A stretch of DNA of 64,000 nucleotides from Octopus vulgaris (taxonomy: Eukaryota). The DNA is taken from the NCBI GenBank assembly GCA_951406725.2, contig OX597817.1, positions 46,128,001 to 46,192,000 of the forward strand, given 5' to 3'. The stretch's first letter is position 1; every line of letters begins with the position of its first letter. Shown here piece after piece: positions 5,285 through 41,223 of the stretch. Made by a program: the position numbers and the translations under genes. Below the pieces are notes generated by a model that saw nothing but the letters and a program-made list of their open reading frames with translations, did no database searches and had not been told where the DNA came from.

Positions 5285-5965
5285 TTTTACCGTTTTGTCC
5301 ACAGATTCTGCACTTATCACTTTCTGATGTGCTGTCTATTCTGCATTTTATATAGTTAGTTTTTAGTGCTTGCTCTTAATCAGCGCAGATTAGAGCCAAC
5401 GTTTCCGATTTTAAATCACTTTCAGTCAGCCACAGCCATATCTCTGTCTGTCTCATCTTCAACATCCCTATGAAATTGACCATGCATATATTCTTTACCC
5501 ACCTATTTCCAGTTTCATTCGTTTTCAATGTCCTGTATACTGCTTTATCTTTGCAATCTTTCATCCTACACAACCCTGAGTTTCTTATTTCTAATAATAG
5601 CGGTTCTGTGGCATGTTTACATACCATGCTATGTTGTTTTCCTATGCTCTAATGATGTGTTTGCATCCAAGAAGTCTTTTTCCTGGTACATACAGTGTGT
5701 CTGTGTCACTTTTTGGATGGAGTGCCCCATATCTAGTTAGCAACTTCCTTGTCTTGATCTAAGCTGTTTAATTCGTCTACTGTCCATGTGATTAGCCCTG
5801 CTCCACATCTAAGGAGTGAAACCGCCCAAGTGTTGATAGCTTCGATCTTATTCAGTCCGTTTAATTTCGACTGAAGGATCAGTCTCAGTCTGCGCAAGTA
5901 CTTCTTAAACTTTTCTGTCATTTCTTTCTCCATCAATTTATCCATTTCCAAAATCCCAAAATACT
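5285..5965 (-). mobile_element. R4/Dong-like non-LTR retrotransposon remnant (RT C-terminus plus zinc knuckle), disrupted
   Basis: Minus-strand peptides KYLRRLRLILQSKLNGLNKIEAINTWAVSLLR, WLWLTESDLKSETLALICA and KTNYIKCRIDSTSESDKCRICGQ resemble recalled R4/Dong ORF motifs. Stops and frameshifts present; adjacent to (ATC)n(ATT)n at 5965-6027. Confidence 0.75.
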
Positions 5966-5979
5966 TATCATCATCATCA

Positions 5980-39049: not shown

Positions 39050-40289
39050 TTGCTTACATAAACAGTACACATATAGAAATGTACATACTTTATATATCTG
39101 GTGTAATTAAGAGCAATAATAGTCTAGACGATGTTTAACTTAATAATGCCATGTTGTTAATGACTGTTATTCCTGAAAATAAGCGTCCTCGTGTTGTTAT
39201 GCAGGAAATTGATTTTTGTCAAAATGGCTGCTTGTTTCATCAGCTAATATTTGTAGATATTTTCCCATATATACAGTTTAACAATGTACCTTCATTAAAT
39301 TTTTGTTTTGATTCTCTTTTGTTCTTATTATAATCGTGAGAAAAAATATTTGCAAATGTAATCACTATTGTACCTTAAGGAACATACAATCGTTTGCCTC
39401 GAATGGTATTTTATAATTTTATAGACTTTATAAATTTCTTCTGTCTTTTCTATAGGTATTCCCATGACCATTGCCCTGATGACCTTTAAATATATCACTG
39501 CTTTTCTTCCCAGACGCATCGTATTTCTGTCGGTAATAATTTCTTTTATTTAAATAGCGTCTTTCCTCGAACTGACCCTTTCTGGAACACTCTACCACCA
39601 TCTTGTTTTCCCCTCGTCAATGATGTTTAGTCATTTAAGGTTTCTATCAATCGACACATTTTGAATTTCTAAGCGCCTTCTACTTCTCTCTCGTGCCTTA
39701 CGCTACAGTGGCAACGAGCCTTGTTTTGGGACAGAATTATACGAAAGAATTCGAGCATTTTTCATTAAACAATTATTGTAAAACGATATCCTGGTGCTGC
39801 TGTTATCCTGGTGATGATTATTTTCAGTTTAATTCATGGCTTCCACTGTGTTTAATTCCAGTCACTGTATGTGCCGGATAATGATATTTAATGTCTTATT
39901 ATTTAATGAACCGTAGTGTCTATTATGTAAAATGTCAAGTTGTTTGCTTTCCGAGGAATATGCAATACTGCTTCCTAAATGAGGAGCTGGCCAAACGAAA
40001 ATAGCAAACCAAACAGAATCCAAGCATATGATGACAACATAGAGTAAAATTTGATGAGCAAAACTATTCGTTGAGGTTTTCCATAATTTACGATACATGG
40101 CGATGTATTGCGCCTTAAGGGACTCAACTAAACTATCCTGTCGTTATATAATCGCTGAAGAGGACTAAAAAGCCCGAAATATACCTGTACTTGTCATTTT
40201 CCATATCACAAGCAATACACATTTCCCATCGTATGACTTTGATCATTGATCAATTTAAATTTAGATTATTCTACATTTTGTACAATGGT

Positions 40290-40514
40290 AAGAATTGTAC
40301 ATTATTTACATTATTTACAATTGACGCATATTTGTCCTCATTTTGTTTGTTGTTAACACAACGTTTCGGCTGATATACCCTCCGGGCTTCATCGGGGAAA
40401 CTTTGAACCTAGGTTCTTATTCCTAAGGTATTTTTCGATGTTGTTGTTATTATTATTATTATTATTATTGTTGTTGTTTTTGTTGTTGTTGTTGTTGTTG
40501 TTGTTATTGTTGCT

Positions 40515-40550
<36 letters not shown>

Positions 40551-40634
40551 GTTATTATTCAGGTCACTGTCTGGAATCGAACTCGGAATCTTGGGGTTAG
40601 TAGCCCGCACTCTTAACTACTATGCCACATGCCC
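40290..40634 (-). mobile_element. tRNA-headed SINE with (AAT/AAC)n linker and a hammerhead-like 3' tail
   Basis: Head at 40634-40558 with A box (40617-40627) and B box (40574-40582), microsatellite 40440-40557, HHR-like motif 40355-40395. Confidence 0.65.
40355..40395 (-). ncRNA. Degenerate minimal hammerhead ribozyme
   Basis: CCGAUGA-A-GCCCG(GAGGGUAUAU)CAGCC-GAAACGUU-GUGUU. GAAACGUU is intact, the core has U4>C, helix II is partly broken and the helix I 5' strand is missing. Confidence 0.45.
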
Positions 40635-40704
40635 GTGGCGTAGTGGTAAAAGCGCGGGCTACTAACCGCAAGATTCCGAGTTCGATTCCAGACAGTGACC
40701 TGAA
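40635..40704 (+). mobile_element. Inverted duplicate of the tRNA-like SINE head
   Basis: A box TGGCGTAGTGG (40636-40646), B box GTTCGATTC (40680-40688), followed by (AAT)n; directly abuts the minus-strand head. Confidence 0.85.
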
Positions 40705-41223
40705 TAATAATAACAATAATAATAATGATAATAATAATAAATAATAATCATAATAATATGGAATGCATACATTGTTTTACTTTTATGCATTACTAGTATA
40801 TGTCTGTGTAGAGCACAGTCTTTTTATGTGTATCTATTCTTATTAAGCTCCCTTTTGTTTTGGAATAAATAGACATAATAGAATGTCTACTGACTGATGT
40901 ATGTCATTTTTGTATTCCCTTCATTTTATTTTTGATGTATAAATTAAGGGTAAACCACGTTTTACGCCCGCCCATATATCGCAATCGATGAACTCTTAAA
41001 ATAAACAAATAAATACAGGTAATGCCGTGTTCAGTTATTAAAGACTGTCATTTATTCTTTAAAATTGGAGACCTATTCAAACTTAATAATGTACAATATC
41101 GTTCATCTTTCTTCTATGACATCAGCGCTACCTTAGATTGAAGAGGGAAAATTATTCGTGTTTAAATATAGAGGTCTTATATAACTGAAGCATGTCTACA
41201 GGTGTCGACCGTACTTGTGAATA

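Follow-up and report, generated by a model that had tools for sequence, protein, structure and literature searches.

Which enzyme copies a short interspersed nuclear element (SINE) whose tail carries a ribozyme motif? This question is raised by a composite repeat at positions 40296–40758 of a 64-kb stretch of Octopus vulgaris DNA (contig OX597817.1, 46,128,001–46,192,000; this whole stretch of 64,000 nt is called the window, and its own numbering is used below). SINEs are normally explained as parasites of long interspersed nuclear elements (LINEs), with which they share a 3′ tail. On the minus strand of the window, a head with A and B boxes of the RNA polymerase III (Pol III) type runs through an (AAT/AAC)n tract into a GAUGA motif; a first-pass annotation made from the letters alone had described this order, and all of its parts were present, apart from small revisions. 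The same annotation suggested that the repeat might be a SINE mobilised by a Penelope-like element (PLE). We consider it probable that the feature is one non-functional, decayed member of an abundant composite SINE family whose copying in trans is most likely done by a Penelope-like reverse transcriptase (RT)/GIY-YIG endonuclease; the mobilisation by a PLE is what we infer from the architecture and the motif. The window copy has the following parts.

40703–40758, plus strand: (AAT)n tract of the inverted arm (Tandem Repeats Finder, period 3), part of the inverted repeat and followed by unrelated flank
40636–40702, plus strand: inverted, 5′-truncated head copy with its A box at 40636–40646 and its B box at 40679–40689
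40560–40639, minus strand: forward head with Pol III type-2 promoter-like boxes, the A box at 40627–40617 (TGGCATAGTAG, one mismatch) and the B box at 40583–40573
40439–40559, minus strand: internal (AAT)n/(AAC)n microsatellite between head and tail (Tandem Repeats Finder)
40296–40438, minus strand: tail, ~145 nt of unique sequence, 89% identical to positions 1–154 of the family consensus (blastn and alignment)
40355–40397, minus strand: remnant of a minimal hammerhead motif (alignment to the consensus)
40262–40295, minus strand: candidate decayed ~35-nt terminal extension, uncertain, with weak similarity (AAATGTAGAAT versus AAATATAGAAC)

The forward head begins GCCACGGGCAT, which is the family 5′ end less one C, and the inverted head is 87% identical to it. 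The inverted head begins directly with its A box, ~13 nt of the family 5′ end (GCCCACGGGCATA) being absent, and the two heads share the 4-nt palindrome TGGC/GCCA as an overlap; the first-pass annotation had recognised the abutting inverted copy correctly, but its figure of 6 missing nt needs this revision. The inverted repeat has arms of 94 nt each (40522–40615 and 40647–40740; 94% complementary), which include microsatellite sequence, indicating that the duplication comprises the head and the microsatellite and not the head alone. The inverted arm begins inside the microsatellite and is tail-less, since blastn found no tail after its (AAT)n tract. A target-site duplication was looked for around the window copy and none was found. 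On the minus strand 3′ of the forward head, the first run of at least four T lies at 40171–40167, exactly as had been noticed from the letters, and the two heads, judged by their boxes, would act as divergent promoters.

The hammerhead remnant reads ...CCCC-GAUGA-A-GCCCGG...UCAGCC-GAAACGUU-GUGUU on the minus strand (40397–40355), with GAAA at 40367–40364 and the equivalent of the cleavage site between 40360 and 40359. Relative to the family consensus, a 9-nt deletion (AAGACACCT) between 40394 and 40393 has removed the 5′ strand of helix I together with C3 and U4, so that the ribozyme motif of this copy is dead, and helix II carries two substitutions (GGCTGG to GCCCGG). The ribozyme had been called mutated at first sight, and these are the lesions. 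By them, the window copy is an ordinary decayed and dead member of its family.

The family was characterised by genome-wide searches of the 2.80-Gb assembly (227 contigs). Its intact unit consists of a head of ~80 nt, an internal (AAT)n tract, a tail of ~150 nt and an optional terminal extension of ~35 nt, and its usual layout is a large palindrome: the reverse complement of the tail, (ATT)n and the reverse complement of the head are followed by head, (AAT)n and tail. Direct repeats of 9–16 bp were found at the outer tail ends in 18 of 32 two-armed units, versus 2 of 160 shifted controls (1.25%), indicating that the whole palindrome is a single insertion. An inverted arm adjoins the 5′ end in at least 32 units among ~58 loci, and the head-to-head junction of the window copy, CTAC↓GCC(C)ACGGGC (arrow, junction), recurs in at least 14 other loci. 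The inverted head that had been noticed in one copy is therefore a recurrent trait of the family, found inside units that are bounded by target-site duplications.

The two arms of a unit end differently. The short arm ends at (GTAAATAAT)2GTA, near tail position 145–158, with a repeat copy number that varies among copies, whereas the longer arm continues for ~35 nt to ...ATATAGAACTGTA. Among 30 distinct two-armed units, exactly one extension was present in 28 and none in 2, and no unit had two. The extension is usually carried by the inverted arm, the length of which ranges from 13 nt to nearly full length. Even seemingly single heads have 13–110 nt of inverted tail directly upstream, always from the extension's end, indicating that the inverted arm is a 3′-anchored, variably 5′-truncated second copy. 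The arm junctions show 1–3 nt of microhomology.

Head-to-tail arrangements also occur. At one locus (L123, G000:C2:2733700-2736500), 8.5 head-less units of 215 bp each follow one another, every unit consisting of (AAT)n, tail and extension, with the extension serving as the linker into the (AAT)n of the next unit. An inverted, extension-bearing partial copy precedes this array, the last unit ends in the short form, and the whole 1.9-kb structure lies within one target-site duplication of 12–13 bp. The junction from extension to (AAT)n (at most one mismatch) was found at 56 places in at least 30 loci, with 0 in the control. Several of these loci hold small arrays with a spacing of 188–220 bp, tandems being a minority arrangement in the family.

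The 29 aligned tails yielded a consensus of 185 nt, and the internal (AAT)n/(AAC)n tract was present in all 29 copies. In the consensus, GACAC, CUGAUGA, A, GGCUGG, an 8-nt loop, UCAGCC, GAA, ACGU and U↓GUGUU (arrow, predicted cleavage site) follow in this order, so that the boxes CUGAUGA and GAAA stand in type-I order and every feature of a minimal hammerhead ribozyme (min-HHR) is present. These include the unpaired A after A9 and the G10.1–C11.1 pair (CUGAUGA-A-GGCUGG...UCAGCC-GAAA), a helix I of 5 bp with one G-U pair (GACAC/GUGUU), a helix II of 6 bp (GGCUGG/UCAGCC) and a helix III that consists of the palindrome ACGU without a loop (GAA-ACGU-U↓G), with GUU↓G as the predicted cleavage site. 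The minimum-free-energy fold of the consensus includes helices I and II. The single-copy fold of L033 lacks the hammerhead because this copy has a helix II mutation. The proposal that a family consensus would restore CUGAUGA and helices I and II was thus borne out by the 29 copies and by the fold.

For counting, we used a motif descriptor hand-built for the loop-less min-HHR, with the palindrome required. It gave 20 matches in family tails versus 0 in 25.5 Mb of shuffled sequence, and no match on the window copy. Genome-wide, a 39-nt core of the motif had 1,218 exact occurrences and 14,853 with at most 3 mismatches, whereas the reversed controls gave 0. About 20 nt upstream of the hammerhead, at consensus positions 24–35 (window 40415–40404, minus strand), lies the self-complementary 12-mer GAACCUAGGUUC; the window copy has its T variant, in which the palindrome is perfect, and the commoner C variant has a mismatch at the centre. 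This 12-mer could help two RNAs to pair. In the L123 array, all units are changed at or near the predicted cleavage site, either by a 3-nt deletion or by C11.1-to-U plus G1.1-to-A; from this single example, it is possible that arrays arise from units unable to self-cleave.

The head is linked to this tail throughout the genome. A composite pattern of A box, 25–45 nt and B box occurred exactly twice in the window, at 40627–40573 on the minus strand and at 40636–40689 on the plus strand, and in 0 of 50 shuffles. In the consensus head, TGGCGTAGTGG agrees with the A box at 11 of 11 positions and AGTTCGATTCC with the B box at 10 of 11, the two lying 33 nt apart. ARAGORN, relaxed settings included, reported no tRNA in the window or in the head consensus, and the Rfam tRNA model gave no match at E≤10 on the window copy or on a good family copy. 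A tRNA-derived head, as originally described, is therefore suggested by the promoter boxes and their tRNA-like spacing, whereas a cloverleaf was recovered by neither ARAGORN nor Rfam. A first look at the genome listed 2,033 candidate heads and 2,514 candidate tails, and the tail was found downstream in 26 of 28 loci picked by the head alone; the linkage of head and tail, on which the first-pass reading depended, thus holds in other copies. No (AAT)n tract stands upstream of the heads in the family loci, indicating that the heads are not nested insertions in a microsatellite. Accordingly, the head as a (TAA)n-targeted SINE nested in a separate tail element was ruled out. The tail as a later insertion into (AAT)n was ruled out as well, because the tail is not followed by (AAT)n and is itself enclosed by the target-site duplications.

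The min-HHRs described in PLEs have two catalytic boxes, an unpaired base after A9, a G10.1–C11.1 pair, a helix I of 4–5 bp and a longer helix II; their positions 15.2–16.2 are palindromic and helix III lacks a loop, which implies that they act as dimers, and they lie in the pseudo-long terminal repeats (pseudo-LTRs) of the elements (Cervera & De la Pena 2014, PMC4209133). The octopus motif has the same type-I topology, the same boxes, the extra base after A9, a short helix I and a palindromic 15.2–16.2, and the min-HHRs of PLEs likewise exist as thousands of dispersed copies, most of them outside any full element (PMC4209133). Unlike them, the octopus motif lies downstream of (AAT)n within the tail of a SINE that has a Pol III head, and none of the Penelope open reading frames sampled by the 40 flanks described below was accompanied by the same sequence. 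As for the insertions themselves, those of PLEs are heavily 5′-truncated, form partial tandems, frequently carry an inverted 5′-truncated copy at their 5′ end and have a 30–40-bp extension at one end, features that are not seen in the target-primed reverse transcription of LINEs (Craig et al. 2021, PMC8557442). All four features are found in the SINE family, and two of these Penelope hallmarks, the one-sided extension of ~35 nt and the head-to-tail arrays, go beyond what the first-pass annotation had forecast. The SINE differs from PLEs in its short unit (~0.35 kb), which is non-coding and has an internal Pol III promoter.

Two further systems resemble the family. Animal non-LTR retrozymes are tandem hammerhead repeats of ~170–400 nt that have been proposed to be non-autonomous Penelope derivatives (bioRxiv 10.64898/2026.07.22.740005). 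The head-less units of ~190–215 bp, each with a hammerhead motif and arrayed in L123 and in at least five other small arrays, are similar to these, whereas most copies of the SINE are dispersed single or inverted units with a Pol III head. Sm-alpha and Sj-alpha of schistosomes are short, very abundant SINE-like retroposons with a Pol III promoter, a hammerhead motif and tandem copies (Ferbeyre et al. 1998; Laha et al. 2000, as summarised in PMC6765202). The hammerhead of Sm-alpha is a canonical one with loop–loop contacts and proven cleavage, whereas the octopus motif is a putative hammerhead of the minimal, dimer type. The SINE also differs from Sm-alpha in that a microsatellite separates its head from its ribozyme motif and in that inverted duplicates dominate. 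A hammerhead of the Sm-alpha type was not found in the family, which has no helix III loop and gave no match to Rfam Hammerhead_1/3. Taken together, the hammerhead motif, the inverted 5′-truncated copy, the one-sided extension and the partial tandems make up the published Penelope/retrozyme signature, and Penelope-type copying is the most likely source of the family.

Penelope machinery is present in the genome, which abounds in GIY-YIG-coding sequence. A PLE with the same tail was searched for in ~1.5 kb 3′ of 40 GIY-YIG domains, taken from 5,955 first-look candidates in the genome (148 of 150 scored exceeded the Pfam cut-off), by blastn and by Smith–Waterman alignment versus shuffles. All 40 sampled domains are C-terminal, as judged by the positions of stop codons. 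One young-looking Penelope-like family has at least 16 copies with identical scores and a GIY-YIG domain in an uninterrupted frame of 781 aa. The 3′ region of this intact family (L063, G000:C4:116253200-116255000) contains repeated GATTGGTCA...TGATGACGTC modules, and the descriptor found no canonical min-HHR in it.

Several observations weigh against copying by a PLE. The autonomous PLE with the same tail that the first-pass annotation had anticipated did not appear: tail-like sequence was present in 0 of the 40 flanks (a sample of 40 from 5,955 candidates, in which absence is not shown), and a canonical min-HHR was matched by the descriptor in 1 of the 40. The original proposal of a PLE-mobilised SINE thus stands in its architecture and motif, through the consensus, the linkage and the inverted units, and not in its partner. 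Three genome pattern screens for the tail start or the hammerhead outside the SINE returned no recurrent context, but heterogeneous deletion or truncation junctions, suggesting that a coding partner that shares the tail would have the microsatellite upstream too, or be rare. A bias of the SINE's target sites towards microsatellites was not seen, which is a further difference from PLEs. The short-form 3′ end, with its 9-nt tandem repeat, also resembles the 3′ ends of stringent CR1/L2-type LINEs.

The ribozyme itself attracts other objections. The Rfam hammerhead models (RF00163, RF00008, RF02275-7) are silent on intact copies even at E≤10, as would be expected because the models require a helix III hairpin, and the call of a putative hammerhead is made by the hand-built descriptor. 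The window motif gave no match to these models at E≤10 either, and neither a hammerhead nor a tRNA was matched when Rfam was run on the region, on the window in full and on 12 family loci. A hit of Rfam Hammerhead_HH9 at 40136–40205 on the plus strand (15.7 bits against a gathering score of 52; E=1.6) was judged to be a chance match, as it lies outside the element and its helices are mispaired; it carries the boxes CUGAAGAG and CGAAA. Thermodynamic z-scores are unremarkable. The copies have decayed uniformly, with ~92% identity per site, lower at CpG only, and show no sign of selection or covariation; the family is homogeneous and therefore affords no covariation test. Retroposed copies keep the sequence 3′ of the predicted cleavage site, indicating that their template RNA was uncleaved there. 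In addition, a common tail subfamily has a 3-nt deletion at this site (GAAACGUGUUAAC versus GAAACGUUGUGUUAAC), includes the L123 units with this deletion and accounts for most of the 744 exact pattern matches genome-wide; by the canonical rule, the deletion places G at position 17 and should inactivate the motif. The missing coding partner and the sequence kept past the cleavage site are the chief reservations, and ribozyme activity is a prediction.

The tail also stands next to LINEs at several loci. In L061, L012 and L062 (LINE-A) and in L040 and L053 (LINE-B), the C-terminal coding region and 3′ untranslated region (UTR) of a LINE are followed by (AAT)n and the tail. The LINE upstream encodes an RVT_1 domain with LINE-type RT motifs, a CCHC finger and an RPD..D..K C-terminal domain; its full-length relatives have ~1,130–1,200 aa and neither an APE nor a GIY-YIG domain. 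The best solved relatives are R2 proteins, with which the restriction-like endonuclease region aligns, and by these domains the LINE is a Dong/R4-like member of the R2 superfamily that ends in (TAA)n. Dong/R4-type LINEs end in and target (TAA)n. A degraded RT fragment resembling LINEs of the R2 superfamily also lies in the window itself, at 5295–5966 on the minus strand (~30% identity to the relative P0011 by tblastn).

If the tail belonged to this LINE, the SINE would have borrowed both (TAA)n and tail from it. This would explain the five adjacencies and the (AAT)n common to LINE and SINE, and the relatives with RT, CCHC finger and RPD..D..K domain do match R2 structures. Yet among 20 LINE-A 3′ ends picked regardless of the tail, the tail followed in 1, whereas (AAT)n and unrelated flank followed in 19. 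The 3′ UTR of LINE-B is unrelated to that of LINE-A, and both LINE-B and an unclassified element X, which ends in ...CTCTCACTC(AAT)n, adjoin the same consensus tail. The upstream edges of LINE-A, LINE-B and element X are (AAT)n or a SINE head (L012, L048 and L062), and in L012 (1590–2741) and L048 the guest element lies between the (AAT)n of a SINE head and the tail. Guests that are flanked by (AAT)n or a head on one side and by the same tail on the other indicate that (TAA)n-ended elements are nested in the internal microsatellite of the SINE, whose target-site duplications lie outside the tail. The R2-superfamily LINE, first seen in L061, was therefore rejected as the owner of the tail, and we regard its ownership as highly improbable. 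A tail matching a conventional LINE, which would have counted against the original proposal, appeared at first sight to have been found and did not hold up for this LINE. An ordinary SINE–LINE partnership of another kind, in which a conventional non-LTR LINE, such as a stringent CR1/L2-like one, shares its 3′ end with the SINE as the tail and mobilises it by its RT, with the hammerhead-like motif as a mere passenger or relic, is in our view unlikely, if not to the same degree. The short form (GTAAATAAT)2GTA with its varying copy number is like slippage at L2-type ends, duplications of 9–16 bp fit target-primed reverse transcription of the APE type, and the GIY-YIG flanks yielded no Penelope element with the tail; nevertheless, the 29 tail-selected loci contain no LINE body before the tail other than the nested (TAA)n-ended elements, and neither the tail start nor the hammerhead has a recurrent alternative context in the genome. 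Moreover, inverted 5′-truncated copies, one-sided extensions and duplication-flanked arrays are unlike target-primed reverse transcription by LINEs (PMC8557442), and the probability that the full motif arose by chance is negligible, given the absence of descriptor matches in shuffled sequence.

The palindromic units might instead be foldback or miniature inverted-repeat transposable element (MITE)-like DNA transposons, with the tails as terminal inverted repeats and the heads and microsatellite as cargo. In keeping with such elements, the arms are long and inverted, they meet at a central junction, and both outer ends carry short direct repeats. However, the duplications vary in length between 9 and 16 bp, the arms are systematically unequal, with an extension on one and a variable 5′ truncation down to 13 nt on the other, many copies are single-armed or form head-to-tail arrays, and the junctions show microhomology of 1–3 nt. 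These properties point to reverse transcription and not to cut-and-paste, so we find the DNA transposon explanation barely plausible. Least credible of all, to the point of being dismissed, is a coincidence of two independent SINE insertions, or of a local rearrangement, with a chance motif. The window copy, taken alone, could be read in this way, as it has no detectable target-site duplication, its motif is broken and Rfam is silent on it. The same head-to-head junction nonetheless returns in at least 14 other loci, duplications enclose two-armed units at a rate far above that of the controls (18 of 32 versus 2 of 160), and an intact motif is present in the consensus as well as in thousands of copies, with no descriptor match in the 25.5 Mb of shuffled sequence.

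Other hammerhead-bearing repeats were encountered during the analysis. At positions 183–2180, the window contains a second, unrelated one, composed of two inverted units of 535 bp (183–1116) and two forward units (1116–2180), with arms that are 99% complementary, (TA)n flanks on both sides and an inverted plus tandem layout like that of the SINE. The descriptor matched GUUUUGG-CUGACGA-...-GAAA-CAAUUG-UC↓CCAAAAU at 1410–1494 and 1945–2029 on the plus strand and at 1006–1090 on the minus strand; Rfam gave no match to this repeat. Its tandem and inverted units, set in a (TA)n target, make it a young structure of Penelope/retrozyme-like form, and its layout counts in favour of Penelope-type copying of the SINE. 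A third hammerhead type (UUGG-CUGAUGA-long helix II-GAAA-CGAUCG-UA↓CCAA) occurs elsewhere as an inverted pair that adjoins a Penelope 3′ flank (L100:456-541 and 1553-1638).

Returning to copying by a PLE, we tentatively put forward a more specific account, which we hold as a possibility worth stating. In it, the SINE family would be a chimera of a Pol III head and a retrozyme-like Penelope module, the latter comprising (AAT)n, a dimer-type hammerhead and two cDNA starts, and would be propagated by a Penelope-like RT/GIY-YIG enzyme; hammerhead-paired, multimeric or circular RNA would explain the inverted duplicates and the arrays. Driven by the head, a Pol III transcript would run through (AAU)n, then through the tail, and on into the flank. 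The Penelope-type RT/endonuclease could then start cDNA at either of two tail sites, the (GUAAAUAAU)2 repeat or the end of the extension. The inverted arm would be made when priming occurs a second time, now from the opposite target strand and on either the same RNA or a paired one, which would explain the different starts of the two arms, one at the extension end and one at the 9-nt repeat; for the window copy, priming of the inverted arm would have taken place inside the microsatellite. Arrays might be derived from multimeric or circular head-less RNA. The hammerhead, with a helix III formed only between two copies, may resolve multimers or may act as a dimerisation or recognition element.

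The family is apparently an undescribed, and unusual, combination of known parts: our literature searches returned no SINE, whether from octopus or from another organism, that joins a Pol III head to a Penelope-type tail. In a 2026 repeat annotation of Octopus vulgaris, most SINEs are left unclassified, and active Dong-R4 and Penelope families are reported, with no mention of hammerheads. One practical consequence is that the internal (AAT)n of the SINE serves as a landing pad for (TAA)n-specific LINEs, which misleads automated calls of SINE–LINE partners. The transposition mechanism of PLEs is still poorly understood, and their retrozyme derivatives have been recognised only recently. In the tail of this SINE, the ribozyme motif of PLEs is combined with their integration scars, and the family consists of thousands of small, alignable insertions that record how this class of RT starts, switches and finishes its cDNA. 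If our reading is true, a large block of the octopus 'unclassified SINEs' would be tied to the Penelope machinery, the family would be a second animal precedent, after the schistosome Sm-alpha, for retroposons that combine a Pol III promoter with a hammerhead, and it would provide a natural test of the role of the minimal hammerhead in vivo.

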